Assembly: GCA_047495785.1 (NCBI GenBank)
Contig: JBLDXI010000001.1
Coordinates: 2,976,001-3,040,000, forward strand
Direction of reading: 5' to 3'
DNA from: Lepidodermella squamata
Lineage: Eukaryota > Animalia > Gastrotricha
DNA: 64,000 nt
The position numbers and the translations under genes were made by a program. The stretch's first letter is position 1, and each line of letters opens with the position of its first letter. The notes under the pieces are model-generated. The model ran no database searches. It was not told where the DNA came from and saw only the letters and a list, made by a program, of their open reading frames with translations. Positions 17,178 through 55,508 of the stretch are shown here, piece by piece.

Positions 17178-20100
17178 ATGGCTTCATCAGAGTTCAAATT
17201 TCGTTTTAGACATCTATACACGCATCATTCAGGTATGAAATAGCCTTGAAATTTGTAAGTTAGGTAAAAGGGTTTCCATTAACAGCGACTTCAAGTCCGC
17301 TTTCAGCAGAGGAGACTGTTAGTTCCCTACTTGCAAATCCACAAGCTGTCAATGCCAATACTCCCTGTGAAATAGTGGTATCAGAGAAAAACGGGCGTCT
17401 CGAAGTCTACGCGCATTCGCCACCTGAGTCACTTATCGAGGCATTTGAATTCACCCATATTAGTGAGGTGAAATGCCTTAGAACAGATCATTCGAACCCA
17501 TTGCTGATTGACATCTTGGCTATCACGGTCAAAGAAGATACCCACCTATTTTCACCGAGATCGGGGGTTCAGGCAGCTGAAGTTGCTGCTAAATTGAATG
17601 AAGTCATTAAGCAATCGGTTTCTCTGAATCCTCGGAAGTCTGATTACACGAGATTATACGCATCGAGAAGGAGCAGTACTATGGCTGGAAGTAAACCTCT
17701 AAAAATCAAACTCGAGGTTCCAATCGAAACAGAAACGCTGAATAAATGCCTTGAGGAAGTCGAATGGTTTTGCAATCAACTCATGCCTGTGGTAAGTTTC
17801 TCAGTGTTCAGCACGCCATATTCGTAACATGTTTTTAATCAGCATATCCAGGAGGTAAACAACATTGCCACTTTAAATCAGCAATTGCGAGACCTGGAAT
17901 CTAAACTTGGCTCGAAAAGTTCATCGACTCGTAAGAAAGCCGAGACTGAAAAGCTGCAAATACAAGCCCAGCTCGGTCAACTTCAGACGGCAACCAAATC
18001 AACAGCCGAAGCTTACGTCAATATTGTTCAAAAAATCAGGCTCGCGTATTTCCTAACTGCTAGATTGAAAGCACAGCTGAGCGCTCAACAGCCACCCTCA
18101 TACGAGCCAATTCTGCAGTCGATAACAGCGAGATTTCTGGCTATAGCGAAGTTCACTGAAGCTAGATTTCCTTTCCAGGGTAGCCTGGTCAATGCTATTA
18201 AGATTCCAATGTTCAATCGAGATGTTCTTACCGCTCTTTCTGAACATTTCTTTCAAATGGACCTGGCTACTAAAGGCTTCTGGGAATCGCTTGGTCCAAA
18301 CTGGAAGGTAGCTATGTAAGGATTCCTCAACAATAATTTTCCTACTAATTTATAGCTTTTGTAATGCAGAGAAGATTGGACGGGTGACATCGATTTCTAT
18401 CAGCCAACATTCCGCCAAAATCCATCCCAGCCCATTTTACTCCGATTTTTGGACCCTGAAGTTATCAAGGCCTGGTTGGTAGCAGTTCGCGACAGAGAGA
18501 AGGCGGCGTTGGCAGCAGAAAGGATGAACTCGATGGTTCAAGATAGCTTCAAACAAGAGCTCATTTCCGATAAAAGAACTGTCTGTGTAATCACCTCACT
18601 CGAAGGCATCGACCCATCGCAAGATTTGGCTGTAGAGATGGGCGAGATCCTAGAGTACTGCGCTTTGCTGAAGGGCGGCATTGTTCGAGTGAGAAACGCT
18701 ATCGGAGAGGTCGGGACACTTCCTCAGGAGGTTGTAACCAAACTAGAGGAACAGAGACAGTCCACGTCTATACCAAAGGAAGTGGAAAGCATTGACGAAG
18801 CCAAGGAAGACACGTTTGTAAGGCAATTGAAAAAAGAGAACAAACGGATTGCCATCGTGTTGAAAGAATCGAGCAATGCGGATGGCTTTCACGTTCTGCC
18901 TGGGCAAGCTGTTCATATCATCGAACAAGGGGAGTCGGATAGCACGGTAGTAAATGCTGATGGAAAAGCAGGGGTCATACCAAATCGATCCTTCTTCTCG
19001 CAACCAATGATAAAAGACACGTTTGATCTACTGCGAGACGACAGCTCAGGTTCGCCATCCAAAGGATCGGGGGTTCAGTCAAAGGCAAGGTAATTCATTG
19101 GCATGATAAGTAAAACAAATAGCAAATTTTCCGTTCACAGGAGTAGCCGACTTGCAGATTTTCAAACAATTTTCAAACAAGAACTTGAAGAAGCCCGTAA
19201 GGTTGTAGCAGTAGCTCTGACAAAATTTAAAGACGAGGCTGCTGGATTCGAAATCGAGAAAGGAGAAGTTCTGGAGCTCACGGAAGATTTTCGAGACGGA
19301 AACATCCGAGTCGTCAACTACGACAGGGTTTCTGGGATTATTCCCAAATCGAAGGTAGTCATTTCAAAGCCTAAATCTTCAAACAGCGTAACAGCGGAAG
19401 CGTCGTCGGTAAAAGAATCAGAAGAGCGTTCTATTTCCAGGTAAGACTCTATGGAATTTACCAGTGCAACTTTACTTTTGCTTCAGCCAAAGGAGTTCGA
19501 CTTATGCAGAACCAGCGTCAAAACTTCTGGATTCATTGCAGAATGCTTTCAAGACAAAACTAGAGAGGGAAGGCAAGTACATCGGGGTAGCGATCAATTC
19601 AACCTGGGATGAAAAACGAGTCATGTTTATCGAACGTGGTGAGATTTTGGATGTGGTCGATGAATACGAAGATGGAATGGCTTTGGTAGCGAACTGCGAG
19701 GGCAAACAGGGGGTGGTCGAGGCGGCAAAGCTTATCATCACACCTCCTCCTCAAAAACCTGCTGCAGCTCCTTCGCCGGATGACAAGAAGGAACTCGAGA
19801 GTGTTATCAAGAAGTTAAGTGGGAAAATGGAGGCGATGCAAGCTGCTAACGAAGCTAAAGCCAAGGCGATGGCTATTGCTGAAGAAGCTGCGCGAAACAG
19901 GCGGCGACTTGAGTTGGAAAATCAGCAGCTTCAAGCCGCATTACGCGAGCAGCAGGAAGTTGCAAGAGCCCAGGAAGAGCTGCGGAAGTTACAAGAAGAA
20001 AATGAGAAGAAAGAGAGACGACTGAAACGAGCTGAATCGAAGAAGATTGTCAAACCAGCCCCTGCCCCAGCCCCACAAATATCGTCTCGAAAGGCACCGG

Positions 20101-21711
20101 GCGTTCAGGATGCTTACAAAGCTAAGTTGGAAGCTAAAGGAGCTAGATTTTGCGTCGCTAAATCTGCGCAACAAGATGGCAATGGATTCTCGGTGGAGGA
20201 AGGAGAGTTTCTTGAGGTTAAGCTCGATATCGGCGAATACTTACGTGTTCAAAATGTTGATGGTGGCATCGGCAATGTAGCTAGTAAAGAGGTTACTGAG
20301 ATCAGCCCAGGTCGTAGGGTTTCCAGGGTTGAAAAGCGAACCTCCACTGCTGAACAGCCAAAATCTGTCCAGTTCTCCGGGCAATCCAGCGATCCAGACA
20401 ACGCAACTGTCGAAATATCAAACAGAGCTACCCCGTCTGATCTAGACAATCCGACGGTGGAGATTGCTCAAAGAGCCAAGTTGGCGAATCGTTACCCGGC
20501 TGGTTCGAGGCGCTTCAAAGACTACCAAGACCATGAAGTGTTAGGAAGCGGATCTTACGGCGTTGTGATTCTATCAACCAGAAAATCTGACCGGCAACTC
20601 ATGGCTATCAAAGAAGTTGCCTTCAAATATGGGGATAATGACAAGACGCGGCAAGAAGCTGTAATCCTTCAGAAATGCTCCCATCCTAACATTGTCAAGT
20701 TTCTAGGGACATTTGAAGGTTCGTAGGACACATTTTGGTCAAAATACAATACAACTACAGTTTTCCTGTGTAGAGAACAACTACCTTTTCATTGAAATCG
20801 AGTACTGTGCAAACGGTGGGTCCTTTAATGGTATCAGGTTATTCAAAAGTAAATTCCCTTAATAAAGGTGCTCTTTCCAAGTTGATTGTCGAAAAGGCCA
20901 AAAACAATAATCCCTTCGACACTCAAGAGGTACTGTCATTAAAAGGTTCAAGCTTTCTGATACGCTGCTAATGCTTTCCTTTTACAGATCAGTAAATGGA
21001 CCAATCAATTAGCAAATGCACTGAGCTATTTACACTCTAAGAAAATCATACACAGAGACGTCAAGGCGGAAGTAGGAAATTGCATCATATTAGGATACGT
21101 TAGGATACCCTTTAAACTTTTCAGAACATTTTTGTTACTAATCAGTCCGATGTGAAGTTGGGCGACCTGGGAGCAGCAACTGACTTGAATGGGTATGTAA
21201 ATGCTTCAACCTTCGATAATTCGATCATCATATTCCCCCTTTCCTCAGAACGATTCAGATGCTAAAGGCGAGAACATTTATTGGCTCTGTTCCAAATATG
21301 GCGCCCGAGCTGCTGAGGGGCGATCCTTACGACGAGAAAATCGACATTTGGGCTCTTGGCGTTGTCATCTTTCAGCTTGCAAGCTTTAGCCAACCTGTGA
21401 GTGTTCTGAACTCGAGAAAATTCGATCCAAATTTTGCAATTTTTTCACAGTTTGGGACCGATTTCATTCAAATTCACAATAACATCTTTGTAGCGTTCGT
21501 TTTACTTTTGATTTTTTTGTTAAATTGTTTAAATATTTCACTTTCCGAAAATAGGAAGAAGAAGCCACTGTTACCTAAAGCTTACCAGAACGATAAAGCT
21601 CTAGTGAACCTGGTTGAGGCTTGCTTGAGCTTCGAAGCTAAATCGAGACCGCCCGCCAGCCTTATTCTTCAACACGCCTTTGTCAAAACCGGAGAAACAA
21701 CGGACTTGTAA
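17178..21711 (+). CDS. EPS8-like PTB/core + five SH3-like repeats + coiled coil + NEK-like Ser/Thr kinase (~1296 aa, 13 exons)
   Basis: Exons 17178-17232, 17286-17791, 17843-18315, 18370-19089, 19141-19440, 19487-20718, 20774-20815, 20868-20929, 20988-21071, 21125-21192, 21249-21396, 21451-21494, 21555-21711 sum to 3891 nt in one frame. EPS8-core-like motifs: ETLNKCLEEVEWF, VQKIRLAYFLTARLK, FWESLGPNW..EDW..FYQPTF. Kinase motifs: GSGSYG, AIKE, HRDVKAEN, KLGDLG, APE, DIWALG. Confidence 0.8.
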
Positions 21712-25300: not shown

Positions 25301-26148
25301 CGGCCATTTCTCGGGGAATGTACCATTTCTTCATATTTTCACATTTTTTCGGTCCTAATCTCACCAGAAACCAATTTAGAAGGTCGAACCAGTTTTCAGA
25401 ATTTAGAGATAATTTGCCCTGATGAATCATGCAATTTTCAAAATTCGATTTTCTTAAGTTTTGAAATTTTCAGGCCTCGGAATTTTTCTTAATTTTTTCA
25501 ATTTTTTATTTTAGGCGTTCGAGTATGCAACATTACGAGAAAAGTTCGAACAGCAAGCTCCGCCCATCGAAATACAGCCACCGAGCGAGCATCGGAACTA
25601 CTCACCCTGTCAGCTCAAATGAATATCCGGCGAATAGCTCGGCTCGAAGGTCCCTCAACAGTGCTGATATCAGCCCGAAAGTGTTGTCGAAAGCTCTTCA
25701 CGTCACAACAATCCTAGCCTCGCAATCCCTGCAATCACCCCCACCCGCCCCGCCGCCGACCCCGTCGCCGTTCTCGCAACTCGACCTATTCGCACAGCAG
25801 TCATTCAAACGGCAGCTTCAAATCGACGGCAAGCGATTTTGCTCCGTTACAAATGCGTTATATGCACATCGCAACATAGCCTCCTCGGAATTATCTGTCT
25901 GCCAGGGTGAGATATTGGAAATCAGTGCTGATTTAGGCAACGGCATGTGGCGAGTTCGAAATGCTGACGGTGATACGGGCGATATTAACAGTGCCGCGTT
26001 GACTGAGTTGACGCCTCGGCGGAGCTCGCAAACCGACTCGCCGAAATGGACTACGAAATCTCACTTTAACGGTGGAATTAGGCCTAAAATGACGAATATT
26101 CCAACGGAATTCGACCAATTAAAGTTAAGGGTTGCTCCTAAAAATTGA
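22345..26148 (+). CDS. Putative two-exon coiled-coil + Pro-rich + EPS8-type SH3 protein without kinase
   Basis: Exon 22345-22529 (ELRQILDENEELKRRIEQLK) joins in phase 2 to 25515-26148, which encodes PPPAPPPTP and QQSFKRQLQIDGKRFCSVT..ELSVCQGEILEI..WRVRNADGDTGDI. The SH3 exon is well supported; the join across a 3-kb intron is inferred. Confidence 0.6.
23463..23710. mobile_element. hAT-type MITE (248 bp) with perfect 8-bp TSD
   Basis: TIRs CAGTGTGCGA / TCGCACCCTG (9/10); TSD CCCATCAG at 23455-23462 and 23711-23718; internal GGGGGGGATCATCCCCCCC hairpin. Confidence 0.85.
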
Positions 26149-50386: not shown

Positions 50387-52818
50387 ATGGAATCGAAAAA
50401 GCTAGAATTTTTGCAGATTACTTGGTTAATTTTGATGCCAAGTTTCATGGTGTCAAGTGCAGTACCAAGAGTATTCAAATCATCTAGCCGAGGAGATTCG
50501 CGGCGGCAAGAGATAAAAATCCCAGTGATCTCGAATTACGGTAAGTTATGAGTATGATTAACTCGAAATGAACTAGAAAAGGAGTAGCTTTTGCTTTAGA
50601 TGCATTTTCTATCTAACTGTCTCCTTTTTTAGGTGGATTTGTGGGCATCGGCCCTTTTGCAACTGAGGGTGTTCAAATCGCTGTTGATGCAATAAAAAAC
50701 TCGACGAATCTATTGAAAGACTACGATCTAACAATCGAGATGTACGATGACATGTGTGATTCAGCTTTAGGGATAGATCTTGCACTCACAATTTTAAATG
50801 ACGAGGAGAGGAATTATTTCCCTATTATCATTGGCCCCAGCTGTCCTTCTTGGTTGTACACCGGCCAGGTTCTGCCGTATTACAACTTCGTAGGCGCTGG
50901 GACGTGGGTCGGCAGCGTGGGAACGTCTTTCTTCGGCTTATTGAATGCATTCCCAATGGTCTATGAAGCTTTACCGCATTTCATCGCTAGCAACAAATGG
51001 AAGCGTGTTTTTCTTATCACGGAACTACTGACCAGCTGGTTGGTGTTGGAGTCTTTCTTGCAAGAGAGCTTGAAAAACTTGAATATCACTTTGTCTGCCG
51101 TAGTCAAGGTCGAATATGTTGGAACATCCCTTCCTAGCTTTGAGTCCTTTGATGAATCTGTAAGAGAGCTCGCATCTTATGACCCACGAGTAATCATCGT
51201 GAATTCAAATTTTCCGGGAGCATTGGCATGTGAGTTTTACAGGCAAGGCAAGTACGGACCGCATTACGTCCTCCTGTTTGTTGGCTTTGCATATTTCACG
51301 CCAGAAGTGCAGTTCAAACAGCCGTGGTGCAAGCAGGAGATGATTTTTGAAGTTCTGCACTCAGTCTTCTTCTTTTCTTACGGTAAGAAGCTTGACATCG
51401 AGCCTGACGAGGAAGATATCGTGGGATTGACGGGCCGCCGATTTGATGAATTATTGCGAGCAAGATCGTCCTTTACGAGATACCAGCACTTATGGTTCTT
51501 CTTCCGCGATTTCTCTTACACTCAAGTTCTTGCGACAGCTGTGGTTCTGAACCAAACAGATCTAGAACTTAGGAGTAAAGGAGGTAATCTTTCGAATTGG
51601 GCGATATCTGGGGGACTATTCAAAGCCGACGGAAGCGTCATCGCTGCGGTTCTTGCTGAGAAATACCGCAATCTGCGAATGAAGAGCTTCACCTTAGAAG
51701 ACAGAGAGCCAATATCTAGCCTCAGAGGTGTCACAGCCTTTTATCAAGTACGAGTGGTTGACAACAAAATCCAAGCTATTCCAGTAGCGAAAGTCGACTC
51801 ATCTTTCAGCCCACCGCGATTAACTGGCGGTCCAGGTCTCATCAAATGGCGAACTCCAGACGGATTAGCACCGTCGGATAACGTGATAATAGCTTTGAGC
51901 CGAGGACCAACCCTGACCAATGCATCAAACTTTACGCTAGTCATACTTGCAGCGGTTTTACTGATGGCAAATGGCGTGGTGTTCGCCCTTTACTTGAGGA
52001 ATAGAAACTCTGAGCTGATAAAGAAAAATCTACCGGCTATGAATTTCGGCATTTTAATGGGAAATTTTCTGCTATTAAGCTCAATTTTCATTCTACCACG
52101 TGAGATAGTTGGAAACCCCAGTGTTAGATGTATGGCTGCATCTTTCACTGTTCTTATCGGATATTCCTTAATCTCGTGCTGCCTCCTAGCTAAGCTGCAT
52201 GTTACATGCAAGGTCTGCCTAAAACCGGAGACTAGAAAAAGCAACAAAACGACGACGTTGATCGATACTAAGATTCTGGAGAGATCGAAATCTACTTCTT
52301 TAGTGACTGCTCTTTTATCATGTTGTTTCCAAGTCGTCATCATGGCCGTTTGGTTTGGCATCGAGCCTATAGAGACTTACTCTTATCTGGTGAAGGAGGA
52401 ACTAATTCACGCAAGTCTTGTCAATCAACAAGTCAAAATTTCCTGCCGCCTACCCACTAAAACGAACGCTTCCCTTGGATTCATCGCATACTTTGGTTCT
52501 TATTTTGCCCTTCTTTACTTGAGAACAATTTTTTATGTCTTCTCCCTGAGAAAAGTGAAGGTCAACAGCGTTGTGGATACGACTTCAACTCGTACAGTAT
52601 CCTACACATTGGGAATAGCTGTTGTTGCTGGTTTCGCTGTTCTTTTGATCGTATCAAGTGGAGATCCAGGCGACGTCATTTTAGCTCTAATCATAGTTTT
52701 GGAAATCATTTCATTGCTGTTGCTTGCGATATTATACGCCCCACAGGTAAGAGTTGATGTCAAATTAACAATGAACCCTAATTAAAAATTGCAGATTCGC
52801 CGAGGCTGGCTTCTGTAG
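50387..52818 (+). CDS. Class C GPCR, GABA-B-receptor-like (paralog C, closest to A)
   Basis: Exons 50387-50540, 50633-52746, 52795-52818. Long near-identical stretches with paralog A; ends IRRGWLL*. Confidence 0.85.
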
Positions 52819-53408
52819 GAAACACTGAACATAATCTTAATGTCTGGTTTTCGACAACAATCCAGCCGCTAGCTCTTGATCATGCTCATCAGCTAAATCT
52901 CTGACGATAGCCGGAGAAATAATGAGAGTAGAGTGCGATTATTGCTGTCCCCAGCAGAAGGTTGCGCGGCACAGACATCGGGGTAAATTAGGGTTCTAGC
53001 TACACAGTCTAGCGATAACAGACGTAGCTGCAAAGCTTATGTCAGTTAATAAGAAACTAAAAGGATGGAAATTTAAAAAGATGAATTCATCTCCTGTATT
53101 ATTCCTCAAATATCAACTATAAAAATACCTGTTGGAGGTTTCAGCATCGAGCTACCTGAAACTTTCATTTAATCGGAAGTTTTGTATCGTCACTAAAGCT
53201 ATTTTTACACAATAAAAAGCCAAAATCCAAATAAGCGCGATAATTTGATTTTCGAATGCTGTCGATTGCTCCAATGTCCGAAAAATTGCTTCAGTGTGAC
53301 CATGGACCTGACTCAGATTGATTTATTTCAAATAATCGTGCTGTTGCTAATGGTTTAACTATGTTCTTGTTCTTTTCAAGTTGAGTGTTGTCCAGGTGCA
53401 AGTTTTCT

Positions 53409-55508
53409 TCAAGGTTTCAAGTACCGTCGCAAAAATCTCTCTTGAAACACGTCTTCAATGTCTGGCCGCTGCTCAGGCTCGTACACCAGCAAGTGATCAA
53501 TGAAACGACTCAGCTCTTTGCTTCTTGATTCTGGCAGGCGGGGTGGACGACTTTTCCTAAATTTCGGAAATTTCATGCACTCGATATGCTAATTGAAAAC
53601 TATTTCATTTACGCTGTTAATTCTCGAACAACACTAGGTATGCTTTCGCCAAACGGGTAATCTAGCATCGCCAAGTAATGCACGAGAACCCCCAACGACC
53701 AGACATCAACTTTCTTGCCGTAGGATTCCGTCTTGGCTATTTCAGGTGCCAAATAGGGGAATGTTCCAATAAACGTGTTTGCTTGGTTCCCTTGGAATGT
53801 CCTGAAGATTCGACAAAGCTGAATTGCTTAAATGTTATCTATTGATCATACCCATTCAATTTCGAAGCTGCGCCCAAATCACCAAGCTTGACATCATAAT
53901 TCTCCATTACAAACACATTCTAAGGGGGAAAATTCCAGTAGAAATCTAGATGCTTCTGAAATAAGGTTACCTCAGCCTTAACGTCGCGGTGAATGATGTC
54001 GAGCTTGTGCAGGTGCTCCAGAGCCAAGCTGAGCTGAAAAGCCCACTTTCGAATCTACAAGCAAACTTTACAACGGCTGCCTTTTCAGATTAAAGCGAAC
54101 CTCGTCCTCTGAAAATTGTTCGGTGTTTGATTTCTTTTGATTGATTGCCTTTCGAAGGTTTCCCCTGCTGCAGAACTCAGTTTCTATGTAAAGCTTGCCA
54201 TTCTCTATTTCAAGCACAATTTGGATTTAACGACCGTTAACTGTGATTAATCAGGGTCTAACCAATGAAAGAGCCGAGGTATTTCACTATGTGTTGGTGA
54301 GGGTGTTTTCGTAAAAACTCGGCCTGTTTGAATTTTCATGACAGACATTATGAAATCATTTTAGAATAGACTATAGGCTTACCTCTTTCAAAGTTTTATC
54401 ATCATGCTTCCCGTCTAGCTGGACAGATTTTATGACCAGCTCCCTGTTATCGCGCTTTCGAATAGCTAAGGTTGCCTCGCCGTAGGATCCTGATCCTATC
54501 TTCTGTTTATCAATGTAATCGCTTTCACGCTTGCTTCCGGCTGATGCTGTTTTGCCCCCTGAACTCGCTCTCGACTTGGACCTGTCAAAACACTTGATGT
54601 AAATGCTTGCTCAATTAACTTGGGATCACCAACTGGGATGTGTCTGCAGATTGTTGAGATGATCCACTCTGTGCCCTTCTTAGAGATGATTTTTCTTTGG
54701 CATCCAATATGACGACCGAACTTCTAGGCATATTGCCAGCCTTTCCATCAATATTCTTGACGCGGCAAAGATTAGAATCTTTCAAGTCGTACAGCAGCTC
54801 AAGTATCTCGCCGGCCTCAACCGAAAATCCGTCGTCTAAAGCCGCTGCTTTGCTGCTGATGCAAATCCTTTTACCTTGCTGCTCCAAATTAGCTTTGAAC
54901 AATTGCTGTAGTTCGGGCAGCAAGCGGTTCTTTGCAGTTGAGATGGAGCTGGTTTTCTTGTCACGGGACAATGTCGAGCTTTCGCCAAGCTTTTCAAGAA
55001 GATTAGACGGGACGTAGCCGCTGCTTCCATCAGCAGTTTTCACCTTCCATTTACTGCTCCGGGAATCGTCAATCAGCTCCAATATCTCGCCAGTGTATAC
55101 GGTAACTTCGCGAGAGGTTTCCGCCACGAAGTGATCTTTGACCTTGAGAGCACTGGGACGAACATTTGATAATCCTGGTTGTACCTCTAAATGAAAACTT
55201 ACGTTCCACCTGTTTTTTCAATCATCGACATGAAGGTCGACTGATTCGTCACATGAAGCCGCTCTCTGTTACGAAAAGGTGATGCTCAAGTTTGTCCTTC
55301 TGTTAACAATGACTTACGGTAGTTCTTCGCTAGCATCAGATTCATCATCGTCAGTAGTGTCGGTTTCAGTTACTTCGTCGGTCTCATCTGATTCGGTAGA
55401 TTCGATTTCAATGCTACCCAGATTTTTGGCCAATACAGCCGCCTTCCGCCGCTCCTCTTCTAGTTTCTTCTGAATATCATTCAATTTCCCTACGCTGTTG
55501 GTCGACAT
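53409..55508 (-). CDS. Coiled-coil/acidic N-terminus + two EPS8-type SH3 + NEK-like kinase (paralog of 17178-21711)
   Basis: 5' exons 55508-55318, 55265-55203, 55152-54634, then 54581 onward. SH3 KVKDHFVAETSREVTVYTGEILELIDD..WKVKTADGSSGYVPSNLLE. Kinase split over short exons missed by the ORF track: IGSGSYGEA, LVIK, HPHQHIVKY, IETEFC, HRDVKAE|NVF, KLGDLG, FIGTFPYLAPE, DVWSLG, PEQRP; stop TGA at 53411-53409. Confidence 0.82.

Follow-up and report, generated by a model that had tools for sequence, protein, structure and literature searches.

Does the locus at positions 53409-55508 on the minus strand of the DNA analysed here encode one protein in which EPS8-type SH3 domains are joined to a NEK-like kinase, and does it descend from the same fusion as a larger gene located nearby? 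The analysed DNA, referred to as the window, is a stretch of 64,000 nucleotides from the gastrotrich Lepidodermella squamata (assembly GCA_047495785.1, contig JBLDXI010000001.1; C1:2976001-3040000 in our numbering), and it was compared with the whole genome (121 Mb, 151 contigs, introns of about 50 nucleotides). The minus-strand locus is called gene 2, and gene 1 is the EPS8-SH3x5-kinase gene found on the plus strand at 17.2-21.7 kb of the window. A sequence-only reading of this DNA had proposed that the two genes are members of a family of SH3-kinase fusions. We conclude, with a joint probability of about 0.74, that gene 2 is one predicted protein-coding gene containing both SH3 modules and a kinase, that this kinase would be competent, and that the gene would have arisen by duplication of an ancestral EPS8-SH3-kinase fusion.

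Gene model and continuity of the SH3 and kinase exons

As modelled, gene 2 comprises ten exons between positions 55508 and 53409, with 1626 coding nucleotides (541 codons plus the stop codon) that are free of internal stops. All nine introns are of the GT-AG type and measure 46-59 nucleotides each. An in-frame stop is located six codons upstream of the ATG at 55508, no further ATG was found upstream, and the stop codon at 53411-53409 directly follows kinase subdomain XI. The plus strand opposite gene 2 carries only short open reading frames (ORFs). The features of the gene, from its 5' to its 3' end, are as follows.

55318..55508, minus strand: exon 1, with the start codon, a short helical stretch and a very acidic tail rich in Ser, Thr, Asp and Glu; donor gtaagt
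55203..55265, minus strand: exon 2, 63 nucleotides, predicted from splice sites and frame alone; acceptor ...taacag, donor gtaagt
54634..55152, minus strand: exon 3, with both SH3 modules and a Ser-rich linker
54990..55145, minus strand: SH3-1, a near-canonical EPS8-type SH3 that keeps the Trp and GYVPSN
54699..54953, minus strand: SH3-2, a degenerate SH3 barrel preceded by a helix; the five repeats of gene 1 are modules of this kind
54582..54633, minus strand: intron 3, 52 nucleotides, linking the SH3 exon to the kinase, with an in-frame TAA inside; donor gttggt, acceptor ...tgacag
54383..54581, minus strand: exon 4, with a Ser-rich linker, the pre-kinase stretch AGSKRESDY, the Gly-loop GSGSYG (54479-54496) and the VIK lysine (54428-54430)
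54263..54323, minus strand: exon 5, with helix C and strand 4 (AEFLRKH..IVKYLGSF)
54101..54204, minus strand: exon 6, with the hinge and the Thr gatekeeper (54179-54181), covering columns 79-118 of the kinase profile
53971..54054, minus strand: exon 7, 84 nucleotides, ending in the catalytic loop HRDVKAE (53971-53991)
53852..53919, minus strand: exon 8, 68 nucleotides, starting with the catalytic Asn and containing DLG (53872-53880) and LNG
53613..53801, minus strand: exon 9, with the activation segment, APE (53741-53749) and DVWSLG
53409..53556, minus strand: exon 10, with the end of the C-lobe (EQRP) and the stop codon (53409-53411)
53322..53327, minus strand: AATAAA, 82 nucleotides past the stop codon, a likely poly(A) signal read from the sequence

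No known domain was detected in exon 1 by the Pfam scan. Exon 2, which has neither a domain nor homology support, could be skipped with preservation of the frame.

The placement of the SH3 and kinase exons in one gene, as proposed by the sequence-only reading, was upheld. Only the 52-nucleotide, in-frame intron 3 separates the SH3 exon from the first kinase exon. An alternative is that the locus gives two products, an SH3-only adaptor ending at the TAA of intron 3 and a separately transcribed kinase, in which case the fusion would exist only in the gene model. Intron 3 indeed has a weak donor, the SH3 frame reaches a stop 17 nucleotides past this donor, and retention of this intron would conceivably yield an SH3-only isoform. 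The gap, however, offers no promoter-sized space, and the kinase frame contains no Met before exon 8, i.e., none until past the HRD motif; therefore, the kinase exons cannot be a separately translated gene. All other frame-compatible GT/AG pairs read from the sequence of the gap between exons 3 and 4 either fuse both frames too or leave an intron of at most 37 nucleotides, and weak donors are used elsewhere in gene 2 as well (gttaga and gttcgc). Furthermore, exon 19464-20723 of gene 1 carries, besides its last three SH3 modules, both the linker and the kinase N-lobe, so the same junction is shown there without splicing. Against this evidence, we consider the two-product explanation highly improbable.

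Properties of the SH3 modules and the kinase domain

Gene 2 was searched exon by exon, and the Pfam, PDB and fold analyses used single exons instead of the joined protein. SH3-1 passed the cut-offs of three Pfam families, namely SH3_1 (PF00018; 27.8 bits, cut-off 22.9), SH3_2 (PF07653; 24.7 bits, cut-off 21.8) and SH3_10 (PF17902; 33.3 bits, cut-off 22.8). Its best match in the PDB was the EPS8 SH3 domain 1aoj (E 4.9e-10), followed by 7tzk and by EPS8L proteins. EPS8-family chains occupied ranks 1, 2, 3, 5, 8 and 9 of this search, where rank 2 is a chain deposited as 'FLJ21522' which we take to be an EPS8-like protein. Within the genome, the closest canonical SH3 domains were those of two EPS8 genes on the same contig, EPS8-b (51% identity) and EPS8-a (44%), described below. 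The description of the first SH3 as near-canonical and EPS8-type, with its Trp and GYVPSN, was thus borne out. SH3-1 was modelled poorly by AlphaFold (predicted local distance difference test, pLDDT, below 55), and its status as an SH3 domain therefore rests on sequence.

In the structure of the EPS8 SH3 domain with a PxxDY ligand, twelve EPS8 residues contact the ligand, and Arg545, Asn546 and Glu549 hold the hydroxyl of the ligand Tyr (PMC9407544). When these contacts were placed on the PDB alignment, SH3-1 was found to keep six of the twelve (Phe542, Glu549, Trp567, Pro581, Asn583 and Leu584) and to carry one conservative change (Phe579 to Tyr), the other five (Tyr540, Arg545, Asn546, Lys565 and Gln566) being altered. 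Judged from this alignment, the hydrophobic half of the EPS8 peptide groove survives in SH3-1. Its EPS8-like choice of ligand is doubtful because Arg545 and Asn546 are among the altered contacts.

SH3-2 remained below the Pfam thresholds, its only match being hSH3 at E 0.09 (13.8 bits, cut-off 25.7). The Trp is replaced by Cys in this module, and both the ALYDY aromatics and the groove aromatics are gone. A single-sequence AlphaFold (AF2) model consists of a helix (residues 67-91) and five strands, with pLDDT values of 74-85 for residues 77-150. Residues 89-151 of the model superposed on SH3 domains with Z values of 7-8.1 and a root-mean-square deviation of 1.8 A over 54-59 residues (VIA-align; the top 50 rows were all SH3). 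SH3-2 is thus predicted by modelling to be a five-stranded SH3 barrel.

Matches to Pkinase (PF00069) were collinear along the gene, with exon 4 covering profile positions 1-41, exon 7 positions 100-127, exon 9 positions 151-199 and exon 10 positions 228-263; exon 9 by itself scored 46.2 bits against a cut-off of 31.7. The entire catalytic set can be read in the exon translations: GSGSYG, the VIK Lys, the helix-C Glu, HRDVKAEN, DLG at the DFG position, APE, DVWSLG and the arginine of RP. From these motifs, the kinase is apparently a complete domain and a catalytically competent Ser/Thr kinase. At the gatekeeper position, gene 2 carries Thr (IETEF) and gene 1 carries Ile (IEIEY), as the sequence-only reading had stated.

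The label NEK-like, which was given to the kinase in that reading, is retained here as tentative. In its favour, gene 2 shares about 40% pooled identity with vertebrate NEK5 (191 columns), a value exceeded only by that with gene 1, and NEK1 was the only match of exon 4 in the PDB. A paralogue in the clade adjoining the two fusion genes in our first tree (L060) matched NEK1 at 100 bits, 30 bits above the rest except for an 84-bit EGFR row that had no significant matched stretch, and it also matched proteins named NEK5, NEK1 and NEK3. Gene 2 itself falls in the part of the tree that holds named NEKs and the NEK-like paralogues of this genome, where the backbone has ultrafast bootstrap (UFBoot) values of 18-52. 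Other exons favour different kinase groups. Since single-exon PDB searches contradicted one another (MARK/CaMKII/MST, NEK1, PLK and MAP4K/MST), they were not used to classify the kinase.

Compared with the NEK1, NEK3 and NEK5 kinases, gene 2 has DLG instead of DFG, HRDVKAEN and GTFPYLAPE, and it lacks a NEK-type C-terminal coiled coil. The usual NEK activation-segment motif is GTPYY.SPE. The AGS(K/R)R..DY stretch was also considered as an internal SH3 ligand of the PxxDY type, and this was ruled out by the lack of a Pro at the right place. Its DY and the spacing to the Gly-loop presumably correspond to what is normal at the N-terminal border of a NEK2-type kinase domain.

Probable common descent with gene 1 and the surrounding EPS8 cluster

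Gene 1 and gene 2 lie 33 kb apart on opposite strands, and in both of them helix-extended, EPS8-derived SH3 modules are located directly upstream of the kinase. The motifs AGS(K/R)R..DY, GSGSYG, HRDVKAE|N and VKLGDLGAA..LNG|, previously noticed in both genes, were found again in each. Four kinase introns coincide in position and phase: one of phase 1 in the Glu codon after F(I/E), one of phase 0 before I(R/S)KW, one of phase 0 after HRDVKAE and one of phase 2 in the Gly codon of LNG. The exons between shared introns are 84 and 68 nucleotides long in both genes.

The last two of these introns had been cited as evidence linking the two genes. Their positions were confirmed, but they give no independent support, since kinase paralogues without SH3 modules share them. 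The NEK-like kinase family of this genome is very large (e.g., L007, L029, L031, L035, L043 and C2:2217354-2221401), and its members share introns after HRD.K.E and in the codon matching the Gly of LNG. When exon pieces of 33 other kinase loci were placed on the kinase profile, all five intron positions of gene 2 were found in L007 and several of them in C2m, L029, L031b, L035 and L043; for the 84-nucleotide HRD exon, at least 147 genomic matches were counted. The shared introns therefore mark membership of a large kinase family and not sisterhood.

Sequence similarity speaks more specifically. The only other match of exon 4, i.e., the pre-kinase stretch plus the N-lobe, in the 121-Mb genome was gene 1, with 44% identity over 54 amino acids. 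Identity to gene 1 was 52% for exon 5 (tblastn), 64% for exon 7 and 68% for exon 8, and the summed per-exon tblastn score reached 234 bits for gene 1 vs. 203 and 199 bits for the next loci. Over 159 pooled kinase columns the two genes are 44.7% identical and reciprocal best matches, the value for gene 1 and C2m being 42.7%. SH3-2 together with its leading helix is 42% identical over 66 amino acids to the last module of gene 1. The best genome-wide matches of SH3-2 were gene 1 modules (45.7 and 44.5 bits vs. at most 33.6 bits for EPS8-b modules), and both SH3 modules of gene 2 align collinearly with the first two of gene 1.

The two genes also differ. Gene 2 lacks the PTB, the EPS8 core and the coiled coil of gene 1. 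The first two absences had been noted before and were confirmed, given that the PTB and core exons of gene 1 have no other match within the 64-kb window and that a stop stands six codons before the ATG of gene 2. The number of SH3 modules varies as claimed (two in gene 2, five in gene 1). The first module of gene 2 is a near-canonical SH3, whereas gene 1 has no canonical SH3. In addition, gene 2 possesses one extra intron (after LKE) and lacks another (in CANG|A).

The kinases were also compared in trees built with IQ-TREE (LG+G4) from stop-to-stop pieces of each locus, each aligned to a 237-column kinase profile and divided into seven partitions that correspond to the exon blocks of gene 2. 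Taxa were the top per-exon matches, and paralogue pieces came from loci of about 3 kb, some of them incomplete. Pieces covering fewer than 140 columns and L044, which is identical to L043, were left out; a second run also omitted the long branches L053_a, L051 and L039. With 33 taxa, the kinases of gene 1 and gene 2 (G1 and G2) were sisters with a Shimodaira-Hasegawa-like approximate likelihood ratio test (SH-aLRT) value of 94.6 and a UFBoot value of 83. After addition of 13 outside kinases, mostly named NEKs, these values were 96.8 and 87, respectively. Trees constrained to pair G1 with C2m or G2 with L005 cost 16 and 13 log-likelihood units, respectively. Neighbour-joining on crude pooled distances, which split gene 1 from gene 2 and paired gene 1 with a long branch, was set aside for the partitioned maximum likelihood analysis. 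Monophyly of the two kinases is thus the favoured estimate, non-significant on about 160-200 columns. The test that the sequence-only reading had proposed therefore came out in its direction, with both kinases as sisters in the best tree, but short of significance.

Both genes are part of a cluster. A profile of 19 helix-plus-SH3 modules (A1), whose best PDB match was the EPS8 SH3, detected 22 modules in the genome, 20 of them at C1:2.82-3.115 Mb and two at C54:3.950-3.953 Mb. The C1 cluster spans about 300 kb and comprises five EPS8-module genes: EPS8-a, gene 1, the ORF at 25525-26148, gene 2 and EPS8-b. The elements other than gene 1 and gene 2 are the following.

C1:2818500-2822450 (L027:2500-6450): EPS8-a, with the core, one degenerate module, a canonical SH3 and a SAM-like C-terminus; no kinase
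Window 25525-26148, plus strand: single-module ORF of 207 amino acids, located between the two kinase fusions; its SH3 module is helix-extended and retains the Trp
C1:3106300-3115600 (L025:2332-9932 and L026:329-1566): EPS8-b, with nine degenerate modules, a canonical SH3 and a SAM-like C-terminal region; no kinase
C54:3950498-3950731 and C54:3952909-3953139: the two modules outside C1, one of them with an in-frame TGA

EPS8-a and EPS8-b are bona fide EPS8 paralogues that flank the window, and no kinase piece was found near the ORF at 25525-26148. A kinase next to EPS8 modules was found in gene 1 and gene 2 only; at the 33 other kinase loci, no EPS8 module was detected within about 1.5 kb. The proposed gene family consequently gained its second SH3-kinase gene but extends to just these two members.

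Based on the sequence comparisons, duplication of the larger EPS8-SH3-kinase gene, gene 1, is the most likely source of gene 2. Besides the weak donor of intron 3 and the five altered contacts in SH3-1, several observations weigh against this reading of gene 2. All junctions were predicted from sequence, with splice logic as the sole support for exons 1 and 2. Single exons other than exon 4 score best with the MARK, CaMKII, MST/MST3, PLK and MAP4K groups in the PDB. The approximately unbiased (AU) test keeps both G1+C2m (p 0.245) and G2+L005 (p 0.234), and UFBoot stays below 95. Finally, gene 2 has its canonical SH3 first and the degenerate one second, the bona fide EPS8 genes have the canonical SH3 last, and gene 1 has none. 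With these differences in the order and type of modules, gene 2 is not what simple truncation of gene 1 would give, and no single order of events leading to its arrangement of modules is favoured.

Retention of these two pairings by the AU test, together with the differences in module order and type and with a kinase identity between gene 1 and gene 2 that is little above that between gene 1 and C2m, would fit two independent fusions, in which different EPS8-module genes each acquired a kinase of the NEK-like family (over 100 copies) and the architecture is convergent. Nevertheless, the two kinases are sisters in the best tree, with both support measures in favour, the exon with the pre-kinase stretch and the N-lobe finds its counterpart nowhere else in 121 Mb, the kinase-proximal SH3 modules with their leading helices are mutual best matches, and the genes are just 33 kb apart, which makes convergence unlikely. 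Another explanation is that gene 2 is a decaying or silent duplicate, intact in appearance yet no longer expressed or functional, as might be suggested by its longer tree branch (0.92 vs. 0.47 for gene 1), the loss of the PTB and core and the lack of an orthologue in the protein library search. This explanation is very unlikely in view of the ten exons with intact splice sites despite about 45% identity to the nearest paralogue, the 541 codons free of stops and frameshifts, the retention of all catalytic motifs and the AATAAA 82 nucleotides past the stop. Collectively, these comparisons favour duplication of one EPS8-SH3-kinase fusion. The earlier claim of a real, duplicated architecture therefore stands as regards a second intact and related gene, while its common descent with gene 1 is favoured but non-significant in the AU test.

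Proposed origin, related proteins and meaning

Under the duplication reading, the ancestral fusion would have formed inside the local cluster of EPS8 paralogues, where the actin-binding part at the C-terminus of an EPS8 protein gave way to a NEK-like kinase. Gene 2 would then have arisen by duplication of this ancestral EPS8-SH3-kinase fusion, and the copy would have lost, or never received, the PTB and core. The predicted product of about 541 amino acids would start with an acidic N-terminal part, continue with an EPS8-type SH3 and a second, degenerate SH3 extended by a helix, and end, after a Ser-rich linker, in a competent Ser/Thr kinase. SH3-1 would dock the kinase on partners with proline motifs, and the kinase would then phosphorylate proteins brought close by this docking. 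SH3-2, having lost its groove, may serve as a spacer or have an intramolecular regulatory role. The latter suggestion follows an analogy with MLK3, whose SH3 domain is implicated in autoinhibition (PMC6120190); autoinhibition is a possible role of the SH3 modules of gene 2.

EPS8 and EPS8L adaptors (1aoj, 1i0c, 7tzk and 2rol) provide the SH3 domains closest to SH3-1. In contrast to these adaptors, gene 2 has neither a PTB nor the C-terminal actin-binding/SAM-like region, and a kinase takes the place of the effector. Proteins combining SH3 domains with a kinase are a classic signalling design. Mixed-lineage kinases such as MLK3 likewise have an N-terminal SH3 followed by a Ser/Thr kinase, which is unrelated to that of gene 2. 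The only SH3-plus-kinase protein among the top 150 matches of the SH3 exon was a MAP3K of Plectus sambesii (A0A914XTF2, P0065), which contains three SH3 domains and a kinase. It resembles gene 2 in having N-terminal SH3 modules and then a Ser/Thr kinase, but its kinase belongs to a STE20/MAP3K-like clade away from G1 and G2, and its SH3 domains are generic ones, not of the EPS8 type. Nothing was found to indicate that gene 2 shares its descent with the mixed-lineage kinases or with the Plectus MAP3K.

No orthologue was found when the SH3 exon was searched against a representative library of 1.84 billion proteins, and no match had an E value below 1e-30; the absence is weak evidence, since records of this genome or of very near ones were possibly excluded from the collections. 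The best match, at 92 bits, was a generic multi-SH3 protein, and the top matches included fungal HET-SH3 proteins and bacterial SH3-lysozymes. The 420-amino-acid SH3-plus-kinase exon of gene 1, used to look for full-length relatives of 231-735 amino acids, gave only a weak PKR match in a search whose candidate list was probably filled by coiled-coil words. Neither an EPS8-kinase nor an SH3-NEK fusion was found in the literature searched.

The combination of an EPS8-type SH3 with a NEK-like Ser/Thr kinase was thus absent from the protein collections and papers searched, and since another copy with a different structure exists, gene 1 is unlikely to be an artefact of annotation or assembly. With two SH3 modules and a kinase in 541 amino acids, gene 2 offers a natural minimal version that lends itself to expression and assays. 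The finding also strengthens the indications that this genome possesses a very large family of NEK-like kinases which combines readily with other domains. The advance is an incremental one, consisting of two genes in one genome and of a modest, lineage-specific product of domain shuffling. In a broader scenario, which we consider rather unlikely, an EPS8 adaptor system would have been rewired to kinase output, with EPS8-derived SH3 domains delivering a NEK-like kinase to proline-motif partners at sites of actin remodelling; the PTB-bearing and PTB-less genes would represent receptor-coupled and constitutive versions, and the NEK-like family would be prone to fusion and fast-expanding.

Some additional observations were made on NEK-like kinases and on the neighbourhood of gene 2. 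Several members of the NEK-like family are arranged in tandem, as at L031, where three kinase genes lie within 3 kb. L043 (C28:362979-366062) and L044 (C34:1356322-1359405) have identical scores on every exon and are located on different contigs, which may reflect either a very recent duplication or uncollapsed haplotypes. In L053 (C15:801476-804691), one open frame of 612 amino acids contains two kinase-domain matches in tandem. A 2370-nucleotide contig from Logan (SRR23086389, an unrelated public sequencing run; L062) encodes a 248-amino-acid kinase (P0153) that is 44% identical to L060 and groups with L060, L029 and C2m in the tree, which may indicate a related organism. Adjoining gene 2, an intronless ORF of 714 amino acids at 50641-52785 on the plus strand of the window resembles, by eye, a class C receptor with a ligand-binding domain and a seven-helix region.

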